NCBI RefSeq assembly: GCF_964204645.1
Contig: NC_134030.1
Coordinates: forward strand, 4,320,778-4,384,777
DNA from: Tubulanus polymorphus
Lineage: Eukaryota > Animalia > Nemertea
DNA: 64,000 nt
Reading direction: 5' to 3'
Each line of letters starts with the position of its first letter. Positions within the stretch are counted from its first letter, which is position 1. Below, piece by piece: positions 12,986 to 64,000 of the stretch. The translations under genes and the position numbers were made by a program. The notes under the pieces are model-generated. The model was not told the DNA's origin, made no database searches, and saw nothing but the letters and a program-made list of their open reading frames with translations.

Positions 12986-13231
12986 CTTGTACTTGAAATT
13001 TCAAGAACGAGTAGATAGGAGATCCCAAATCTCAACATCATCCCTAGGATGGAGGAGGAGGAGAAAATTCATAATTCTTTTAAGTATACCTTATTATTTC
13101 ATACCTACTATTCATTTAAAATATCTGTTAAAAGAGTGAAGAAGGTCATATCAACTAGCCAGTATCATAGTTATTGATTATTCGTCAACATCGGACAATA
13201 ATTGTAGGACAGGTAGTGATTTAAAAAGTTT

Positions 13232-13450
13232 ACAAGCGCCACCCGTACAGTGCCCCCTAGAGATCAAATTGGGAAAATGGCTCTGTAACTTTTTAGCCCT
13301 TGGCCCATAGAATCTACATACCAAGTTTCGTCAAGATCAGAAAAGAACTGTAGCACTAGTAGCAAATTGAAGCATAAGTTGACGGATGGACAGACCGACG
13401 GACGGACAGACGACGACGGGTAATCCCCTAACCCATCAAAACCCATAAAA
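13232..13450. mobile_element. HINE/DINE-1-like (Helentron-associated) non-autonomous fragment
   Basis: AAGTTTCGTCAAGATC motif followed by GGAC/AGAC microsatellite (13381-13419), an arrangement typical of HINE-type elements. Confidence 0.45.
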
Positions 13451-13929
13451 ACTCATTGGAAAGCGGGTTTCATTGAATATCCCTTCCCCAAATATACCAA
13501 TTTCAAATTTCAATGTAATACGGCTAGCATCAGGCTTAAAAATGTTTTTTGCGGCATAAATACCCACAAGAAAGCCATTTTGTTTCTGATCAAAAAATGT
13601 TTTTGAGATGGTGAAATAAAGGGTATTATAAATGTATAACCAAAAATCAAGACGAGAAAAAATATGCAAAATGTACTTATTTTGACCGAGAAACAACAAA
13701 GGCTGGCAGTCCGTTATCTTAATTCTGATAAGGGCCAATACTTAAGATTTGTTTACTGAATATTGAATTTCAACTAAAAAAACTATTCTGACAATTCTGA
13801 TTTCTCAATGTATCATTTTATTGAAGTATTCACAGAAACCAAAACCAATAGAAACCGAACAATCAACAATCAGCAGTTTGTAGAATAACCAGACAGCGCC
13901 TACAGTTAACAATAATAAGTACTGTGCGT

Positions 13930-14270
13930 GGATGCGCTGGTATCACTGGTACTGGCTTGATGCACTGGTATCACTGGTACTGGGATGATGTACTGGTATC
14001 ACTGGTACTGGGATGATGCACTGGTATCACTGGTACTGGGATGATGTACTGGTATCACTGGTACTGGGATGATGCACTGGTATCACTGGTACTGGGATGA
14101 TGCGCTGGTATCACTGGTACTGGGATGATGCACTGGTATCACTGGTACTGGGATGATGCGCTGGTATCACTGGTACTGAAATGATGTAGTGGTATTACTG
14201 GTACTGGGATGATGCGCTGGTATCATTGGTGCTGGCTTGATACGCTGGTATCACTGGTACTGGGATGATT
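13930..14270. repeat. 28-bp minisatellite (GATGCACTGGTATCACTGGTACTGGGAT), about 12 copies
   Basis: Direct inspection; unit length is not a multiple of 3. Confidence 0.92.
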
Positions 14271-15012
14271 ATACACTGCAACTGGGTTGGTGTGGGTTGA
14301 TAGTACTTAAACTGTAGTAATGAAGAAGGCGGCCAATCTCACTACTGACTACCTAGTATCAGGTGCTGAACTCAGAAGCGGTGCTGCGACGTAGCATAAC
14401 CAATTCATAGCCGGCTTCAAACAAATTCATTCTTAATAGAATAAACACATTTTCATCTACGTCGTCATAAAAAAACCAATATAAATCATTAAATAATGAA
14501 TAAATGAGAGATCGATTATACTTACATTTAGTACATTGTTATTGTACGTTGCGCAATTATTCAAACTTTCTCCCACAACCAGGTGACTTCATATAAATCA
14601 ATCAAATCCATTTACTACAGAATATCAAATATATTTTCATTCAATCATAAAACAAAACATCATTAAACAGTGAATAATGAATAATAATTGGAATCTAGGC
14701 CTATTTCACAAATACCGATATTTACAAGATATTTCAAATGAATCACTACTTACCCCTCGAATATTGAATCCATCACCGGAATAATTCACTGACACTGTCA
14801 ATATAATGACAGCTACTTCCCCGCAGGAAAAAATGCTCATAGGCTGGAAAAACACTAGGCTGGGGTTGCTAGGCTTATGAATGGATAAATATTTGGATCC
14901 GGTACCTACCGTAGCTTTTTAGGCCTAATTGAAAATAATTCTTTCAACAAAATAGAAACCTTTTCTAACTTGCAATATAATGAGTTTCATCAATTAAACA
15001 GTTTCAAACTGT

Positions 15013-15781
15013 TTATTTGCCGTTTTCTGAAAGGAATTAAACAGCATCAATGATACATGCTTGGAGCGCATGATGGAAATTCTTTACAAACGGCACGTCA
15101 AATTTGGACCCGGAAATAGGTTTTTACATCATTATAATAAATCCCATCCATCAGAGTCACATTCTATTAAATTCAATTCAATTTTGTTCCGTGAATATTT
15201 GTGTCGAGAGACGGAAAGGAAATTCTATGTCGAGACATCAAGGATAGTTTTATCGTTATTACTTCAGTTAATTTACTGTTTTAATGCAGATATAGAAATA
15301 ATTGTCTTTCCTTATTGAATGTTTCTAAATTTTTTACTTTTCAATAGAATAATTTAGATTCTACCTAGAATGAAATATTTAAGATCAGTAAAATTGAAAA
15401 AAAAATATATATTTGAGATATTGAAACGCCGATATTTTTGTGATCACTTTTGAGATTAAGAGTTGAAATAATTGAACTTTCAAAGTGACTGAGGTATTCA
15501 AATGAATAGAAAAATTATCTGAATAGAATTGGATAAGTCAGTTTAGATATTCTAGTTTAAGATTTCGGATTTGAGAAATATTTAAATGAAATTTCAGAGA
15601 TTTGTGCTAGATATGTTGTGTATTTGATATAACCAAGATAAGTATATTTGAGGCATACTAATTGAGATAAGGTAATGAGTAAAAACTTACTTAAATTGAG
15701 GAACAGGTCGAGTGCCCCGCCATTTTTCAGCACCTCGACCTGTACGGATTTCAGCACGTCGAATAAAAAGTTACATGACAT
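15013..15781 (-). CDS. Putative 34-aa micropeptide, copy A: MSCNFLFDVLKSVQVEVLKNGGALDLFLNLKNGK
   Basis: join(15781..15691, 15026..15013): A|GTAAGT donor and TTCCTTTCAG acceptor, both conserved in paralog at 61530-62410; non-coding exon 1 ends 16130, exon 2 starts ~16023. Confidence 0.55.
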
Positions 15782-15829
15782 GATTGTTGTAGTTTTTGTA
15801 GTAAGTTGTCGACGTTGTTGTAGGTTCCG

Positions 15830-15990
15830 TAGAAGGTTCTGTTGTAGAAGGTTCTGTTGTAGAAGGTTCTGTTGTAGAAGCTTCTCACGGTTGTCGAAGG
15901 TTCTGTTGTAGAAGGTTCTGTTGTCGAAGGTTCTGTTGTAGAATGTTCTGTTGTAGAAGGTTCTGTTGTAGACTGTTCTTCTTGTTGTAG
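15830..15990. repeat. 15-bp minisatellite (GAAGGTTCTGTTGTA) in the 5' UTR of micropeptide copy A
   Basis: About 10 tandem copies; absent from the paralogous exon at 61405-61529. Confidence 0.85.
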
Positions 15991-16129
15991 GTTCTCTGAT
16001 TGCTGCTGCTGCTGCTACTGCTGCTGCAATATTGATAAAAGAAAATAATTAATACCAAGATATCAAATCAAATCAATCAAGAAACATTTCATCGACAGGA
16101 AAAAATAAAATGGACGCAGTTAAGCATAC

Positions 16130-16400
16130 CGGAAAATGGCCGAACTGGAAAGAGTGACCCCGTGACCGGGCCTTATATACCGACACCGGTGTGACGTCAT
16201 ATTACACAATACTGACCAATGACAAGTAACTTGACATTCCCGCCGAGAAGTCAAAGAATGAAATTATTGCCACCGAATTGCCATTAGATTCGAATCCTGC
16301 AAACGGAACGATGGTTGATTTTCTATTAAGGGGTGCCTTCACGTTGGAAAGCGCCGATGCCCGGGCCACACCAGTCTACTTAGTTTTGTGGCCAATTTAA
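16130..16400 (-). promoter_or_regulatory. Pol II promoter of micropeptide copy A (E2F-like, CCAAT, C/EBP-like, CRE, TATA, YY1-like)
   Basis: TTCCCGCC 16237-16244, CCAAT 16216-16220, TGACGTCA 16192-16199, TATATAAG (minus) 16172-16179; same motifs, order and spacing at 61190-61260. Confidence 0.7.
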
Positions 16401-16402
16401 CA

Positions 16403-16610
16403 CACCGTAAATCGGGGTGACTTGAGACGCTTATTTATGATTTTTTCATATGCAGCTCGAGGACCTACTAACAATCTACCCAAATGATGATTATTTGAAC
16501 AACAATTGGTCCCTCTTCAGTTCTAGGCGTGATGAAAAAATGTGTCTAATGATTTTCTAATTTTTTTTATTCAGAAACAACTGTCTCATGTCACCCCAAA
16601 TTTGCTGTAA
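16403..16610. mobile_element. Degenerate MITE (Tc1/mariner-pogo-like termini)
   Basis: Imperfect TIRs ACCGTAAATCGGGGTGACTTGAGAC / GTCTCATGTCACCCCAAATTTGCTGT. Confidence 0.5.
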
Positions 16611-18858
16611 ATAAAAGTCTGTTTGATTTTACGCCGATAATTTGATTCTGTTTGTTCACCAGTTGCAGACTTTAAGCAGCTTATACAACTGTGGAAATAT
16701 TGGATTCAAAACTCAGTAGAACTGGATCCAGTGTAGAACTGAACCGCTGACTACGGCGTATTATTAGAAATCAAATAAGGCCAGAAAATTTGAAGGAACT
16801 CGCTGCTTTTGCTTTTGATGGCTGATCGGGTCTTATCTAAAGGTCGTACTCAAGCTGGTCAGGGATCGAGTTCAACTAATACACCTTTAACCTGTGGAAA
16901 CAGTAGGATATTATGTACAGCCTTGCGCCGATAATCAAGTCTTTTTACTTTGGATCATTTAACCAATCCGTGAAATTGATTGTCCGACAACTATTTCCTA
17001 AAAATGTTGAAAGTCTCTTAAACTCTCCCAAGACCGACTGATGTGCATGGAATGTATGGTGACATTTGAAATTACCACAGGCAGCCGTTATCAATATAAC
17101 TTTTTGAATTCATCGTGGGGAAAAAACCAAACTTTTTGAATTCTGGATCTTAGGTAGAGAGTCTAGATAATTCAAGATCCATAGCGTATTTGCTAAGGTC
17201 CAAATTTTGTTGAAAATAACCCCTCTCGCCTAAAACATCACGCTGGCCATGCTTAACAATGCAGGCCCAACTTAAAAGAATAGCTCTTAAGAAAGAGTTG
17301 CCTTATCAAAATACTCAATTTTGGAATAAGTCGAAATCATTTTTCAATGAATAGGCCTAATTCCAAAATATTCAGTATTAATGGAAATGGAAATTTATTC
17401 GAAGACTAATGTTTCAGTCCACTGGAAATCCACTGCCAAATTTTCCTTGAGATCTGAGAGTAGGGTATAGGCTAATATTTTCATTAGATAGAATAGGTTT
17501 GCGGATTTCTACTTCATCATATTTAGAAATATTCTGGGAAGGATTAGCCATGCATTTACATTATCTGATGCTGTACTATATATACATCATCGCTCCGTCA
17601 TGCCGAGTTATACATTTCACATCAACCAGTATGCAGCTGTTCAGTGTATACACTCTATATCTGAATACGAGGCTGGAATAACATGCTCACTTCACGTAGA
17701 CTGGACTCACTAGATAAGATTAGAATCAGAATGACAAAAATACAACTGAATACGAATTTCGACATCCTTTAATATCGCTATCTCTCAGAAGATAAATCAT
17801 TCATAGCGAACTACGGTCTCAACAGAATGTCAACACGAATTACAACAATCCTGTTCTTGGCAAAATGAGAGTTGAGAAAGTCTTGGCCTCCGTTAAACCA
17901 CAAAAGCAACGAAGACAATTTTGTTTTAAAAATCTGTATTTCCCAATGTGACTTTTGATATAATTTTTCGTTGTTATCGAAAAGAAACGACAAAATTTAC
18001 ACCATAAACAAAATTTGACACTAAGTTCCAAGATATGATTCAAAAGTAATAAAAAATAAACTACTAAGATTATATTAGCACATATTTTCCTCATTGAAAT
18101 ATGACCTACAAACCAATCAACCCAAACATTTCATTTTGCGAAAACTTTCGGTACATGTCCTTGATGCATGCAATACTTGGTTGAATTCATCAGTTCATCA
18201 GTAGAACACACTTGGATTTAAGTGAATAACGTTACAAAAAATAAAATTATACTGTGGAATACTTTAACAGCAGTCTTTATCAAAGCCTAAAGTTATTTAT
18301 AGCACACAAATAGATTCACAAAATACATTCGGAAAAATACACGAAATTCAGCATCTTAACAATTAGCAATGGGAAAACAGAACATTACTATACTTCATAC
18401 AGAACCAAGAATTTTGTAAGATTCCTCTGAAAAACATTGACACTAAACAAGATCGCTAATAACACCGGTAATAAGACGGTTGAAAATACTGACAATTTTT
18501 ACCATAACCTCTCATATCGGACAAGTGTAAGATTTTCAATTACAACATAACTTATCTACTCAATGCACAGAACACCTTACTACATAAAGAAAACACCTAC
18601 AATAGTCTAACTGGTTTTACTATCAGATACGGAACAGATACGGATGACCAGGAAGAACCACGGCAAGAAAACCTTGCTCATAATGCAGCCAAATGAAGAC
18701 ACAATATTCCACAAAAATCAACAGAAACATTTGAAACATTAGTATCATGTGAATTGGACGAGGTTTTGAAAAGCGAAACTACCGAACCATTAGTAAACTT
18801 ATTGATATATCTTAAGTGAACTCTGCCATCAGATCTTTTCATTTGTTGGTGTGTGATA

Positions 18859-49870: not shown

Positions 49871-50269
49871 CTTTCTATGGTGTCTTTACATACAAGGCGT
49901 TTTCTCTCATCCAATAGGAAATTGATAATTTTTGGTTCAAAGCTACATAATACATTTTCCAGAATTGGAAATGTTGCGGAAGTGTAAAAGGGGAAATATG
50001 AAAGAGTTGAAAGATGATAACCTTTTTTTACCGTGTAAAGTAATAATTAATAATAAAATGATAAGTAATAATTTAGTTTGGTGACAAAGATTTAGTAATC
50101 TAAAACGCTCAATTAATGATTTCGAATTCCTACGTATGTTGTTTATGTTTAAATATAAATAATAGTCTTCGAATGTAATATGGTTTACAGATTTTGATAA
50201 ATAAATAACTGAGCATCATTTCACATAATATATACGATTTGTTCATGCTTTAAGGGGACTCATACCGAT

Positions 50270-51365
50270 AGCCTCTCACGAGACAGTATTAAAAATCGGG
50301 TCTTCTCAAAGGAAAGTATTAGAAATCGGGTCCTTTCAAGGGGCAGTATGTTGAATCGGGTCCTCTCACGGGACAGTGTGTTGAGTCGGGTCCTCTCACG
50401 GGACAGTGTGTTGAACGGGGTCCTCTCACGGGACAGTATCAAAAATCGGGTGCTCTCAAAGGAAAGTATTAAAAATCGGGTCATCTCACGGGGCAGTAAG
50501 TTGAATCGGGTCCTCTCGCGAGTCCTCTCACGGGACAGTGTGTTGAGTCGGGTCCTCTCGCGGGACAGTGTGTTGAGTCGGGTCCTCTTACGGGACAGTG
50601 TGTCGAACGGGGCTCTCTCACGGGACATTGTGTTGAGTCGGGTCCTCTCACGGGACAGTGTGTTGAGTCTGGTCCTCACGGGACAGTGTGTTGAACCGGG
50701 TCCTCTCACGGGACAGTGTGTTGAGTCGGGTCCTCTCACGGGACAGTGTGTCGAACGGGGCTCTTTCACGGGACATTGTGTTGAGTCGGGTCCTCTCACG
50801 GGACAGTGTGTTGAGTCTGGTCCTCTCACGGGACAGTGTGTTGAGTCGGGTCCTCTCACGGGACAGTGTGTCGAACGGGGCTCTCTCACGGGACAGTGTG
50901 TTGAATCGGGTCCTCTCACGGGACATTGTGTTGAGTCGGGTCCTCTCACGCGACAGTGTGTTGAGTCGGGTCCTCTCACGGGACAGTGTGTTGAGTCGGG
51001 TCATCTCACGGGACAGTGTGTTGAGTCGGGTCTTCTCACGGGACAGTGTGTTGAGTCGGGTCCTCTCACGGGACAGTAAGTTGAATCGGGGTCCTCTCAC
51101 GGGACAGTGTGTCGAACGGGGCCTCTCACGGGACAGTGTGTTGAATCGGGTCATCTCACGGGACAGTGTGTTGAGTCGGGTCTTCTCACGGGACAGTGTG
51201 TTGAACCGGGTTCCCTCACACGAAACAATGTGTTGAATCGGGTCCTCTCACGGGACATTATTTAGAATCGGGTCCTCTCATGGGACAGTGTGTTCGAGTC
51301 GGGTCTTCTCACGGGACAGTAAGTTAAATCGGGTCCTAGTCTCACGGGACTGTCAATTGAATCGC
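50270..51365. repeat. 30-bp minisatellite (GGGTCCTCTCACGGGACAGTGTGTTGAGTC), about 36 copies, upstream of RBM7
   Basis: Direct inspection; inverted/degenerate units at 51615-51668. The long ORFs here are repeat artefacts. Confidence 0.95.
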
Positions 51366-51742
51366 CGGCGCGGGTCCAATACCTGCATGGTGAATTTTTT
51401 TTATCCCTATTGCCCCCCCTGGCCCTGCAGTAAATAAGAATTTATCGGTAGAGGCCTTTATCTATTTGTAGATGAAATCAAAATGGAAAATGTAATAATT
51501 ACAATTGATAGTTGAATTTATTTATTTATAATCGTACAAGTGCAGAATACATAAGAATATTGGGACTCGAAAACGCTAGCAGTGGAATCGACGTTTCATG
51601 TAAGAATTCTACATTTGTCCCGTGAGGACCCACGTCCCGTCACAGGCCCGTATCATCTCACGGGACGCTGCAGTTTAACTCATACGAGAAAAAGAAACTT
51701 GAAATAAATCATCTTGGGCATATAAATGTGTAACGAAAAATT

Positions 51743-52850
51743 ATGATGAATGAAAAAGAGAAGTGTTTGTTTGTTGGCAATGTTCCGGACGATACTACTG
51801 AAGAACTTTTATACGAATTGTTTCTACAGGTAGGTAAAAATAATTCAGACTCTATTAGTTAGTTACCTACTGTATTATTAGTATAGGCCTACTAATCGTT
51901 GGTGGTGGTAAGCTTTTTATAGTCGGATGGGCTTACCACCAACGGATGTGGTGGTTTGTGAAAATATCCGATCGTGAAACTAAACCACAGACAGGTTACT
52001 GACTAACTTACGAGGTAAACAACAGCTAAACTGAAACAAGCAATATACTGCGTTACATTTGTTTTTTTTTCACTTTCAGGCAGGGCCATTAGAAAAAGTC
52101 CACATTCCTATCGACAGAGAAAGTGGCAAAAAAAAGCGATTCGCATTCGTCAATTTCAAACACGCGGCGTCCGTGCCATACGCGATAAACATTTTAAAAG
52201 GTGTTAAACTGTTCGACAATCCTCTCGATCTGCGAACGAAAAGTGGAGCATCCCACAGCCAGCTGCACAGTCCGGGTTTGGGATTGTTGCCTCATCCGAA
52301 CGTCGGCACCGGTGTCATACCTCCTAAAGCCGTACGAGAACAGCAGTCGAATACGAACTCTAAACGAGGAAGTGTTCAAAATACGAACATTTCTATACCG
52401 GCGAGGGAAAACGGACATCAGGAAAAACTGAGGCTTCTCGAGCTACCACAACAACCGATCGTACAGATGATGGCGCCATCTGGGCAGCCGTATTCGAACT
52501 CGATGACGAATCGGTCTCTATCGTGCCCGGGATTACCGTTGAATATGTTATCTGCGGCTCCGGGTTTTCTGATTCCGAATAATTTCCCCGCGCAATTCCC
52601 GCCGTCGTACAACGGACAACCGTATTCTCCTCAACCGGTGCCGAATAGTTTCCTCGATAAACTACGCGTTTACGATCGAATTCAACCGATGCCGTCGAGA
52701 CACGGCGGTAATAACGAGTCACATCGGCGTAATCACGGTAATCATCGCGGGGGTAACGAACAGACGCCGTATAGTCGACACGAGCGATCGTCCTCATATT
52801 CAGCGTCGTCGAGCAGACGTTCACGAGATCATCGCAGCGCACGATACTGA
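51743..52850 (+). CDS. RBM7: RNA-binding protein 7 (RBM7/RBM11 family, NEXT complex RRM subunit), 285 aa
   Basis: join(51743..51829, 52080..52850): LFVGNV..EELLYELFLQ|AGPLEKVHIP..FAFVNFKHAASVPYAINILKGVKLF, then low-complexity P/Q/R/S tail. Confidence 0.92.
51856..52005. mobile_element. 150-bp internally deleted (or empty) copy of the 58908-59754 element in RBM7 intron 1
   Basis: Same TIRs TAGTTAGTTACCT / AGGTTACTGACTA and same two subterminal hairpins. Confidence 0.8.
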
Positions 52851-59754: not shown

Positions 59755-61009
59755 GATCTGGGTATACTATGACGCAGTACTTGAATCCCGGCCAACATCA
59801 ACCAAAATTGTTGCTTGTTTGATTTTACATTCTTCGGGAAACCCCGGAATCCCGTAACACTAAATCACACAACATGGAATTACAATGAATAAATCATGGA
59901 CATTGGACTCGGGAACTTGAGTCTCGCATCGCCGGCTCGTTTCACTGAGTCGCGCCGGTCCTTGGAAGGTATAAGAGGTGGCTGCCGTCCAGGACAGGCT
60001 TAGCCCATAGTCAAAACAATTTAAAACAAATTATTCATTGTTCATTTATTTTAGAAACAATTTGTATGTTGTAAAATAAGAGTGAGTTTCAGAAAAAGGC
60101 AAGGCTTGTCGGTGACTGACGAAAAAGGAATGTTAGAATAAATGTAGTAGTTGGTTAATAAAGAACTAAGTTAAAAATATAACTACGATAAATATTTGGA
60201 TTATGGAAATACAACACACTCAATATGCTACATGAATATGACAGTTTGGAATGGATTTCAAAGAGGATTATAAATTAATAAGTAAATAATGGCGTTTCAT
60301 CCTCGATTTGAAAATATTCAAACTTTAACTGTATTTTATAGTGTGACTAATTTGATTCCAAAGTTTAGGACCTCCTCTTCAAGCTCAAGTGTAGCCTGTT
60401 CATCGAAATTCGTATTATGGTCTCATTCAATAGATAACTAAACCCATATATGCCAGAACAAAAAGTTTAGGACCGTTTAAGATTTTATTACGTTAGTATT
60501 TCTATTAACGACAAAATGGCGATTAGTCCTCGATGGTGATGCATTGACCTCAAAAAGATCAGGCGAACGTGCAAGGTAGAAGGTTAAGTGAATGACAATG
60601 ATACATCTACCCGAGACGAATTATCAAAGAGCCAATGGGCAGGAAGGAGATGAATTCACCGAAGGTCCTATGTTATTCTAATAAGCCTGTTTTATGATTA
60701 GAAAAACGAATAACTACAATCAAAGTTTACACAGTTTACAATTTACCGACACAACTACAGTCGGAATGTCGGAATTTAAATGCTAATTTCCAATAAGATC
60801 ACACTGCATATTTTTCATCTCCAATGTATTACGTTTTGTCATCACTCAAGTTAAGCGTTGAACAAAAAATCGCTCCTGTCAAATTAGAAAATCCCTGTCC
60901 AATACAACGCTCAGTTTAAGGGCCAGCTGTATCAGTCGTTCTTAAGTCCATTAGTAATCTTACATTTTAAGACTATATAGTCTTAGTCAGTTGACCACAT
61001 ATAACGTTG

Positions 61010-61301
61010 GTAAATTGGCCACATAACTAAAGTCGGTTTTAGACTAGTGTTTAATGACTGTGCAACTGGCACATGGGCATCGGCGCTTTCCTACGTGGAG
61101 GCACCCCTAATAAGAAATAGTATCGCGAACCATTACAGGATTCGAATCTAACGGCATTTTGGTGGCAACAATCCCATTCATTACTTCTCGGCGGGAATAT
61201 CATTACTAGTCATTGGTCAGTCTTGTGCAATATGACGTCACGCCGGTGTCGGTATATAAGGCCGGTCACGGGGTCACTATTTCCAGTTCGGCCATTTTCA
61301 G
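61010..61301 (+). promoter_or_regulatory. Pol II promoter and non-coding exon 1 of micropeptide copy B
   Basis: GGCGGGAA 61190-61197, ATTGG 61212-61216, TTGTGCAAT 61223-61231, TGACGTCA 61233-61240, TATATAAG 61253-61260, GCCATTTT 61291-61298, donor CAG|GTAAGT at 61301. Confidence 0.72.
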
Positions 61302-61529
61302 GTAAGTTGTGCTACGTCCATTTGATTTTTTTGTTGTTGATGAAATGTTTCTTGATTGATTATCTAATATCTTGGTATTAATGATTCTTTTATTAATATT
61401 GCAGCAGCATCCATTACGCAACAGCAGCAGATATCAGTATCATCAACAGCAGCACCAGAAATCAAAATAACGACGACCAACAACACACATACAGCAGCAG
61501 AAGAAGAAGATTAAGATAGAATTTGAAAA

Positions 61530-62410
61530 ATGTCGTACACATTTGTTTTTGAAATCTTGCGGGCGGTACAGGTCGAGGCGGTGAAGAACAGCGGGTCCCT
61601 CGACCTGTTTTGTATCATCAGTAAGTTTTTATTCATTACCTTATCTCAGTTATTAAGCCTCAACTATCTCAATTACTTATCTCGGTTACCTCAAATATTC
61701 AATACACAACAATTTAGCACAAATCTCAAATATCTAAACTGCTAAATACTTACCCAATTCTATTCAGGTAATATCTTTATTCATTTGAATACACCAGTTA
61801 CTTGAAAGTTCAATTATTTTAATACTTAATCTCAAAAACTAATCACAAAAATATCGAGTTTTCAATACCTCAAATGTATAATTTTACTGATCTTAAATAT
61901 CTCAATCATTTGATTCAAGGTCAAATCTCAGTTCAATACCAAAATATCATTGATTTTTTCTTAAATCATTTATTTGTATTCTCAATTATATCATTTAATA
62001 TTCTTTTTATTAAATAACAACTCAATTATTCTTCATTGAAAAGTAAAATTTCATTTGATTCTGTAAATTCGTTCAAGCATCTACAAAATTGAATAAGGAA
62101 AGGAAATTATTTCTATTTCTGCATTAAAACAATCTAAGTTAAAAATTAACTGCAGTAATGACAAATATATATCTACCCTCGATGTCTCATAGAATTTCCA
62201 TTCCTTTGCTTCATTCGAGACTCGAAACAAATATTCATGAAACAAAATTGAATTGAATTTAATACAACTTGACTGACTCTGATGGATGGGATTAAATAAA
62301 ATGATGTAAAAACTTATTTTCGGGTTCAAATTTGACGTTTGTAAAGAATCATATCACTCCAAGCATGTATCATTGATGTTCTTTAATTCTTTTCAGAAAG
62401 CTGCAAATAA
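61530..62410 (+). CDS. Putative 34-aa micropeptide, copy B: MSYTFVFEILRAVQVEAVKNSGSLDLFCIIKSCK
   Basis: join(61530..61620, 62397..62410): AAAAATGT start context, A|GTAAGT donor, TTCTTTTCAG acceptor; same phase and stop position as copy A. Confidence 0.55.
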
Positions 62411-64000
62411 ACAGTTAACAGTTAACGTTAGTCAACTCTGGCAAGCAAGGATTACGGAGTATAATCCAACACTCACATGCCAGAGCAAGGAATATGCAAT
62501 AGTCAGTAACGTTACCGCTATCGTTATACGTAGGGGCAGCACTTACCGGTTAATGTCTGACAGGATTCCGGCGTCGGGCTACACGACGGGATAATGAATA
62601 GATTTTTGTCGAAATTATTTCATTAGTTCCGTATACAAAAATAACCGAATCGAAGAATGAAAGCCCTGCCCCGATTTGAAGCGACTCAGTCCCCGAAACA
62701 TCAGCCCTCTTTAATAAATCAGACTTCATCCTTGTCCCCCAAATTTATTAACTATATCTCACGGAGAGCTCGGTGGCATGGGTGGCCAATTGATGCATGC
62801 AAGGTGTGGCTTGTTTAATTCTTCTTATGCTGCATCACTTTAGGGACCCTACTAGAGCTTAAAAGCGCATTCGACAAATAAAGAACCCTTGAAAGTTGTT
62901 TTTACATCATCATTAATATAATCATATATAATTTTATTATACATTATTTTTCTCCAACATAAATTGCAGATAATTCTATACAAATTTTACATACTGAATT
63001 TAATATCATCATATACAATATAATAAATAGATATTCTATACATAAATGACATCATCTCAGTCAATAATACATTGATCACAGTTACAACATTTCACACAAT
63101 TCACTTACCAGGGTATATTGCAGATAACTTCAGATAAATACAACAGGATGATTAAACAATAGACCTAGTTCTACGAGAGATCACAGAACTGCGCATGCAA
63201 TGTTTCTTCAACATAAAAGAAACCGCTTATATTATTTGAATTTCTTATTGACTTATAAGCTGAATAGACTAGATAAGCATTTTGGTAGCATTTTACTTAT
63301 AATTAGCAGGTTGGCAGTAAATAAACGTATTAAATCATAAGTTAATATTTTAAGTCGAATACAATAACAACTACACTACACATTATATTCAGTACAACAC
63401 TATACATGTGCATGTTACCTACACGTCTATATGTATGACCCTAATAAGCATACCGGGTACGTTATAACATGCATCACAGGCCCACCAGGTTAAACCTTCA
63501 TTTTACTTTCCCCGCTGGTGAATATGCTTCATGGTAATCTTGACTTTTTAAGGACATAATAACAATATCTCGGGATAAACTAACATATATAATATATGTA
63601 TACATAATAATAACAATTTTATAAACTTAACTCCACCACAATTCCTCGTTTGGGATTTTTAAGTTTGGCATAATTTGTTCGCTAATATTTCTGCACCCAT
63701 TGAAGAGTAAACAATATAATCAGTAACAGTTTACAGACATTCCGTTATTTTCACTCGCAGAAGGTTATATCAATTCGTTCAATAGGTATATATAGTCGAC
63801 TGCTTTTGCCTCAGATCACAGGACCGAAAATTCTGGGGCAATCGAAGCAATGATCGTTCATCCTCAAATGAATCGAAGTATGATATGAGGTACCACTACT
63901 GCGGCGAGGATTCGCCAAATTCACCAGTGGTTACTAGGTGACCGCGCTTCAAATTCGTATCAACTATTCTTATCAGAAAATCAATTGAAAGAGAAATCTA

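Follow-up and report, generated by a model that had tools for sequence, protein, structure and literature searches.

The window analysed here is the whole stretch of 64,000 nucleotides (nt) from contig NC_134030.1 of the nemertean Tubulanus polymorphus, and it lies on contig 6 of the 268 Mb assembly. Alignment of two of its stretches, approximately 61005-62420 on the plus strand (copy A) and 16402-14990 on the minus strand (copy B), shows that they are homologous, and each holds the landmarks of a three-exon gene with a frame of 34 codons. The original prediction had placed these landmarks to the base, with a promoter, three exons, two introns and a stop codon within an AATAAA, and all of them are present in both copies. 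Its junctions (61301/61405 and 61620/62397 in A, 16130/16023 and 15691/15026 in B) are correct as sequence positions. The explanation we favour, and consider probable, is that both loci are small RNA polymerase II genes belonging to a lineage-specific family which has been multiplied in repeated cassettes, with a further constraint, at the nucleotide level, on a stem-loop inside the frame.

Anatomy of the locus

Copy A opens with the upstream and promoter segment that it shares with copy B (61005-61275, plus strand), in which an inverted CCAAT box (ATTGG, 61212-61216) is followed by the cAMP response element (CRE) TGACGTCA at 61233-61240 and by TATATAA at 61253-61259. A CRE with TATATAA 12 nt later is found at just two places in the window, the two genes, where 0.03 would be expected. 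The proposed non-coding exon 1 (61276-61301) has a putative start at a pyrimidine-rich initiator about 23-30 nt past the TATA box and ends in CAG before GTAAGT. It is followed by a proposed intron 1 of 103 nt (61302-61404), of the GT..AG type with a pyrimidine tract. The proposed exon 2 (61405-61620) consists of an A/C-rich 5′ leader (61405-61529) with CAG runs, which lacks ATG and cannot be aligned to the leader of B, and of the coding part (61530-61620), which opens with the ATG at 61530 and provides 91 coding nt, i.e. 30 codons and 1 nt, ending in A before GTAAGT. The proposed intron 2 (61621-62396; 776 nt) runs from the GTAAGT donor, with its GT at 61621, to TTTCAG. The proposed exon 3 (62397-62420) adds 2 nt and 3 codons before the stop at 62408-62410, which lies within the AATAAA at 62406-62411, and the homology of this copy ends at about 62420.

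In copy B, on the minus strand, the shared upstream segment, promoter and proposed exon 1 span 16130-16402, with the CRE at 16199-16192, the TATA box at 16179-16173 and the end of exon 1 at 16130. The proposed intron 1 (16024-16129; 106 nt) has a weaker GTATGC donor. The proposed exon 2 (16023-15691) begins with a leader (15782-16023) of (CAG)n followed by a 15-nt minisatellite, again without ATG, and continues in the coding part (15691-15781), which has its ATG at 15781, likewise ends in A before GTAAGT, and encodes a peptide that is the same in all nine copies of this type. The proposed intron 2 (15027-15690; 664 nt, donor at 15690) carries a derived 7-nt deletion near its start, and the proposed exon 3 (14990-15026) has its stop at 15015-15013 and its AATAAA at 15017-15012, with a 9-bp A/U stem spanning the poly(A) signal. 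Both start codons have A at position −3. The tail encoded by exon 3, as read off the genomic sequence of each copy, is K, then S or N, then a variable residue, then K and the stop, the last codon and the stop being fixed because the AATAAA forces them.

The A/U stem of copy B (14994-15019, minus strand; 9 bp, 3-nt loop, −9.1 kcal/mol, z −3.2) encloses AAUAAA, and a stem occurs at the same position in most copies; the A copy of the window stops inside it. The 5′ edge of the A/B core at 61005-61140 holds the B-box-like GGATTCGAATC and has matches at a few further loci, among which a site on contig 3 (4013400-4013576) takes the form of an inverted pair. No tRNA was found at this edge by ARAGORN or Rfam, nor did ARAGORN return anything on the unit as a whole. 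Past the proposed poly(A) site, at 14530-14850 on the minus strand, two short non-coding blocks conserved between A and B are preceded by TAG acceptors and end in GTAAGT donors; these may be alternative 3′ exons.

Copies of the gene in the genome

The original prediction spoke of two paralogs. Both are real, but the number was too low, since a DNA search of the 268 Mb assembly yielded at least 14 intact copies. These full units are spread over six contigs and fall into two subfamilies, five of A-type (L001-L005) and nine of B-type (L006-L014). The ATG, the 91 coding nt and the GTAAGT are kept in all 14, and none of the intact copies lacks a promoter, splice sites or a poly(A) signal of its own. 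Two more copies, on contig 2 at 30.39 Mb, are decayed: one has a +3/−5 nt frameshift and has lost the acceptor of exon 3, while the other has lost its promoter and bears an internal duplication with a stop. Processed copies of the family were not seen in the genome search.

The leader of exon 2 is variable, built of (CAG)n and the 15-nt minisatellite and ranging from 100 to 478 nt among the 14 copies, and there is no ATG upstream of the start in exon 1 or leader in any of them. Translation of the leader itself, as a polyglutamine or TTEPS repeat protein, was considered and rejected, as the copies differ in the frame that it has with respect to the ATG, and stops are present. Pure (CAG)n of about 65-80 units directly follows the intron 1 acceptor in L006 (contig 2 at 25.845 Mb) and in L013 and L014 (contig 1 at 7.53 and 24.47 Mb), where other B copies have about 4-8 units; in the putative 5′ leader this is a strongly length-polymorphic triplet repeat.

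Selection on the reading frame

Within the subfamilies, the differences between copies are strongly biased towards those that leave the peptide intact. The 30 residues are identical in all nine B copies, which differ from each other at just two nucleotides, both synonymous. The most diverged A copy, L005, is about 80% identical to the others overall and 13-20% diverged in its non-coding parts; seven positions of its frame are changed relative to the other A copies, and none of these alters a residue. Non-synonymous changes within subfamilies number three, in L001 and L003. The synonymous share is thereby 8 of 11 when changes are counted as single mutations and 9 of 12 in codon context, where 22-29% would be expected (P 0.0004-0.002), and the other two sense frames give 1 of 11 and 2 of 11. 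The 91-nt frame is also free of indels in the 14 copies, where about 5.9 would be expected from the non-coding rate of the same copies (P~0.003), and the two copies that have lost an acceptor or a promoter are those that also bear a frameshift or stop.

The extent of this constraint was seen by comparing L005 with L002. In the exon the non-synonymous divergence (dN) is 0.014 and the synonymous divergence (dS) 0.39, and when the frame is continued for 36 codons into the intron, they are 0.135 and 0.17 with ten residue changes. The ratio dN/dS is consequently about 0.04 in the exon, against about 0.8 in the adjoining intron, and the constraint therefore stops at the proposed GTAAGT donor. The purifying selection put forward by the original prediction is in this way borne out by the synonymous excess, by the lack of indels in 14 copies and by a constraint that ends at the donor. 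Collecting further paralogues, which might have revealed frameshifts or stops, left broken frames confined to the two decayed copies. By the substitution pattern, then, the 30-codon frame is kept by selection within subfamilies.

The same data bear on the notion that the donor goes unused and that the product is an unspliced frame of 64-74 residues running into ‘intron 2’. The frame does stay open for 34-44 further codons in most copies, and has the same end in A and in five B copies. Against this, four of the nine B copies do not keep it, two being interrupted at codon 39 or 47 and two others shifted by 7 nt, and the added codons evolve neutrally, as the intron values and the ten residue changes in L005 given above attest. 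Through these breaks and this neutral evolution the unspliced frame comes close to being refuted, and we hold it to be very improbable.

Stem-loop within the coding part

The coding part contains a stem-loop, at 61568-61608 (plus strand) in copy A, where arms of 11 bp enclose a 19-nt loop, and at 15703-15743 (minus strand) in copy B, where the arms are 10 bp. The arms encode VQVE and LDLF, and the fold energy is −24 to −26 kcal/mol (z −2.3 in A and −2.9 in B). They form a perfect inverted repeat that is unchanged in all 14 copies. At the residues shared by A and B, third codon positions are changed at none of seven in the arms and at six of eight outside them (Fisher 0.007), and the arms are therefore also held at the nucleotide level. 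This suggests that an RNA (or DNA) structure is superimposed on the code.

Known classes of structured RNA were compared with this stem. Rfam gave no family for the stem or the unit at gathering or relaxed thresholds. MicroRNA precursors are hairpins about 60-70 nt long whose stem measures at least about 22 bp, and structured long non-coding RNAs and such precursors resemble the present case in that a conserved stem-loop lies in an exon of a proposed RNA polymerase II transcript. A microRNA precursor was nevertheless rejected, as the arms, of 10-11 bp (17-19 bp with bulges in A), fall short of about 22 bp and have no Rfam match. A small nucleolar RNA host gene was likewise discarded: the Rfam search at E up to 5 returned a chance match to SCARNA7 alone (11.6 bits), and intron 1 of copy A has a UGAUGA and no D box.

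The predicted peptide and homology searches

For the 30 residues of exon 2, AlphaFold predicts a helix at 3-19, a four-residue turn and a second helix at 24-29, with a mean predicted local distance difference test score of 73, in agreement with the helix-turn-helix proposed earlier. The residues open directly with the conserved helix. The peptide has no signal peptide, no membrane span and no uninterrupted hydrophobic span, and its exon 2 part contains no or one cysteine in A and one in B.

Homology searches were made exon by exon or with contiguous genomic sequence. The 30 residues have no relative in Pfam, in the sequences of the PDB or in the ESM Atlas. A profile run against 1.84 billion protein representatives gave two formal matches, which were both discarded as tandem-repeat artefacts; one of them (P0001) lies on an unrelated metagenome contig without DNA similarity. 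No longer protein with the motif of the peptide was present among the same representatives, a word search with exon 2 and 10 intron codons found no candidate among 5.8 billion proteins, and the two unspliced frames are not on record by exact look-up.

Divergence between the subfamilies

Several observations weigh against the reading of each locus as a small coding gene, one of them being that, of the alignable pieces of the unit, the coding part has diverged furthest between A and B, at 34-35%. The proposed exon 1 is just about 25 nt long. The amphipathicity of the peptide, expressed as its hydrophobic moment, does not exceed that of shuffles, and no homologue was found anywhere among the databases searched. 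Of the 16 residues that A and B have in common, half (VQVE and LDLF) belong to the stem arms. The selection test is built on about 12 substitutions, seven of them from one lineage, and one antisense frame is also synonymous at 7 of 11. Lastly, because the copies sit in repeated cassettes, the constraint could mirror a master copy or gene conversion and not a function in the host. The antisense frame was itself rejected as a candidate: it is without a conserved start, has three residue changes in L005 and runs opposite to the promoter, splice sites and poly(A) signal.

The excess of coding divergence was followed further. Elsewhere A and B differ by 4% in promoter and exon 1, 9-11% in intron 1, 15-17% in intron 2 and 19-20% in the upstream 250 nt. 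Over the 30 codons a recount gave the same 32 differences in 90 nt, without an indel, that had been noted before, and the six cases in which an identical residue uses different codons agree with the aligned codons; 16 of the 30 residues are identical. The dN between A and B is 0.32 and synonymous sites are saturated, the proportion of synonymous differences (pS) being 0.69, or 0.93 outside the stem. When a decayed copy is used as outgroup, the non-coding parts join A with B, and in the coding part A is equally far from B and from the outgroup; 16 coding changes fall on the A branch, eight on the B branch and seven on neither with certainty. This suggests either a burst of divergence at the split of the subfamilies or a later homogenisation of the non-coding parts. 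Given the excess coding divergence and the saturated synonymous sites, the comparison of A with B does not on its own demonstrate purifying selection. The earlier argument for selection, which was drawn from these two copies, is thus right as to selection itself, by the data within subfamilies, and weak as to the comparison on which it was built, in which the coding part is the most diverged.

A non-coding transcript, or a piece internal to an element, in which the exon 2 stem, the promoter and the introns are the conserved structure and the frame is incidental, would sit well with several of these findings. The stem arms are the same in 14 of 14 copies with their third positions frozen, the promoter and introns of A and B are better kept than the frame, and the surrounding unit, described below, has sharp transposon-like ends, several satellites and a terminal 114 nt in common with a high-copy repeat. 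We nonetheless find it unlikely. Synonymous changes continue to predominate beyond the stem, and indels are absent; the constraint ends at the donor, Rfam has no family to offer and the stem is too short for a microRNA precursor.

Repeated cassettes

The gene travels as part of larger repeated units. The whole B-type cassette of the window lies at 13181-17699 on the minus strand, with a sharp common end at 17699 and unique flanks; its other end varies among copies. The upstream end is exact in every B copy, with unrelated flanks, and what the B copies have in common comprises about 1.3 kb upstream of the gene and, on its downstream side, at least 1.8 kb. A high-copy repeat supplies the first 114 nt of the B cassette, which are found with 88% identity at more than 30 further loci. 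Downstream of the gene lies a 28-nt minisatellite (13931-14269, minus strand) that is common to A and B copies, and the cassette of the window stops in satellite units of about 146 nt (13181-13480, minus strand), which have at least 135 matches in the genome, often in arrays. One other B copy is 2.5 kb longer, and three copies on contig 2 have more than 10 kb in common. Within this >10 kb block, about 5.5 kb downstream of the gene, we observed a frame of 217-219 codons that is rich in proline, contains a KRKRKR motif and is without a Pfam match (L032 2662-3315 and L031 1883-2542, both on the minus strand).

The A copies have a sharp upstream end of their own at 59763, where an A-specific part of the cassette (59763-61004, plus strand) starts. 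Four A copies begin there with unrelated flanks, and this piece is present at eight genomic places and is not homologous to the upstream part of B. Downstream extents vary. The A copy of the window ends at 62420, just past the AATAAA, and other A copies continue into a region in common with B that includes the 28-nt minisatellite and the non-coding, exon-like blocks with GTAAGT.

The cassettes range from 2.6 kb to more than 10 kb and have transposon-like ends. One end is sharp, common and set in unique flanks (17699 in B, 59763 in A), and the other differs from copy to copy. Target-site duplications were not found, as the flanks of either window copy have no common word of 6 nt or more. The boundaries show no inverted termini, terminal repeats or Helitron ends, and no transposase or other element protein was found in the cassettes. 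They appear to behave like mobile or element-mobilised DNA. A second downstream gene, with a signal-like exon beginning MSIFSC, was considered and rejected: two copies have lost its ATG, and the lengths of its indels are not divisible by three.

It is conceivable that the cassette is itself a mobile element whose sole product is the spliced 34-residue peptide, that the stem in the frame and the poly(A) hairpin serve it as cis signals, and that A and B are two lineages of the element diverging fast in the peptide with promoter and introns retained. We regard this as quite improbable; if true, it would describe a transposon-like element depending on a micropeptide.

Relatives beyond the intact copies raise another possibility, namely that the frame began as the first coding exon of some larger gene, perhaps one on contig 8, and was captured or duplicated from it and then spread by the cassettes. 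The signs of selection would then be inherited from this parent or from a few source copies, and the dispersed copies would lack a function of their own. On contig 8 there are five further open matches to the two-peptide profile (E 9e-5 and weaker), at 15070193-15070811 (minus strand), 15006627 (plus strand) and 15909738 (minus strand). Three of them are clustered within 620 nt and two are also similar at the DNA level through the donor; they may represent a third subfamily or a multi-module parent gene. At about 25 other loci the similarity, of 70-75% identity, is confined to 160 nt that comprise the promoter, exon 1 and the beginning of intron 1. Seven of these loci follow each other on contig 6 (3875535-4064418) at a spacing of about 32 kb, with about 18 elsewhere, and these may reflect a shared promoter module or a wider superfamily. 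Clustered profile matches, a promoter and exon 1 module occurring alone and three contig-2 copies with more than 10 kb in common would all be in keeping with a captured exon. L005 speaks against this explanation, as its residues are unchanged despite a divergence of 13-20% in the non-coding parts, a sign that selection acted once the copies had dispersed. Each intact copy is moreover equipped with a full set of promoter, splice sites and poly(A) signal, and a longer motif-bearing protein is lacking among the 1.84 billion representatives. We consider a captured and functionless exon doubtful, and return to a small gene family as the preferred explanation.

Elsewhere in the window, at 50260-52850 (plus strand), lies a G+C-rich segment of a host gene in which an RNA recognition motif (PF00076) and, at a score under the cut-off, a CCCH zinc finger (PF25427) are matched. 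Frames overlap there on both strands because of low complexity.

Relation to known systems

A close likeness is to animal genes for small open reading frames (smORFs) and micropeptides on transcripts once held to be non-coding, such as tarsal-less/pri, sarcolamban and myoregulin. As in these, a frame of fewer than 100 codons would open at the first AUG of a putative short, spliced and polyadenylated RNA polymerase II transcript. The gene likewise lies below annotation cut-offs, and its coding signature is visible just by comparison: dN/dS is below 1 and the constraint is limited to a frame of at most 100 codons, which begins at the first AUG after the putative start site. The family has no sequence similarity to tarsal-less/pri, sarcolamban or myoregulin and no membrane span, and it differs from smORF genes in general in having at least 14 near-identical copies in place of a single one and a conserved stem inside the frame.

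Genes may be captured and spread by DNA elements, as in Pack-MULEs and Helitron captures. The present cassettes resemble these in that an intron-containing gene with its own promoter lies in dispersed units with a sharp common end, unique flanks and satellites. They differ by the absence of terminal inverted repeats, target-site duplication, Helitron ends and an element protein, and by their variable other end.

Paralogue families in which the peptide-coding exon diverges faster than the introns are exemplified by snake venom phospholipase A2 (PLA2) and by conotoxins, and the divergence between A and B, 34-35% in the coding part and 4-17% in promoter and introns, is similar. In contrast to those families, the present one lacks a signal peptide, a propeptide and a cysteine framework, and selection within the subfamilies is purifying, not diversifying. 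Among the toxins of nemerteans themselves, nemertides, parborlysins and cytotoxin A-III carry a signal peptide together with either a cysteine framework or a cytolysin domain. A nemertean peptide toxin of these kinds was therefore rejected, as the present peptide is without signal peptide or cysteine framework and has no Pfam or PDB relative. Two papers on nemertean toxins (PMC9415933, PMC10674772) deal with secreted peptides rich in cysteine, to which the present one bears no resemblance. Nothing was found that would link the peptide to secretion or to these toxins.

Proposed mechanism and significance

We propose that the CCAAT-CRE-TATA promoter would drive a three-exon mRNA with a long, repeat-rich leader. 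Because this leader is without ATG, the first AUG would open the 34-codon frame, with 30 codons from exon 2, four from exon 3 and a stop within the poly(A) signal. The product would be a leaderless peptide of about 34 residues with a predicted helix-turn-helix fold, and since it has neither a signal peptide nor a membrane span, it most likely would stay in the cell and bind a partner. The stem-loop of 10-11 bp, conserved at the nucleotide level, probably acts on the mRNA, where it may influence translation rate, stability or protein binding. The family would have grown through carriage of the gene within larger repeated cassettes whose ends resemble those of transposons.

If transcribed and translated, these loci would constitute a new lineage-specific family of micropeptides in a phylum whose small genes are almost unstudied. 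The family offers an unusually clean comparative signature of selection on a frame, because its 14 paralogues serve as internal replicates, and it presents a case in which a short frame and an RNA stem would use the same nucleotides. The multiplication of a small gene that rides on cassettes may further illustrate one route by which such families arise.

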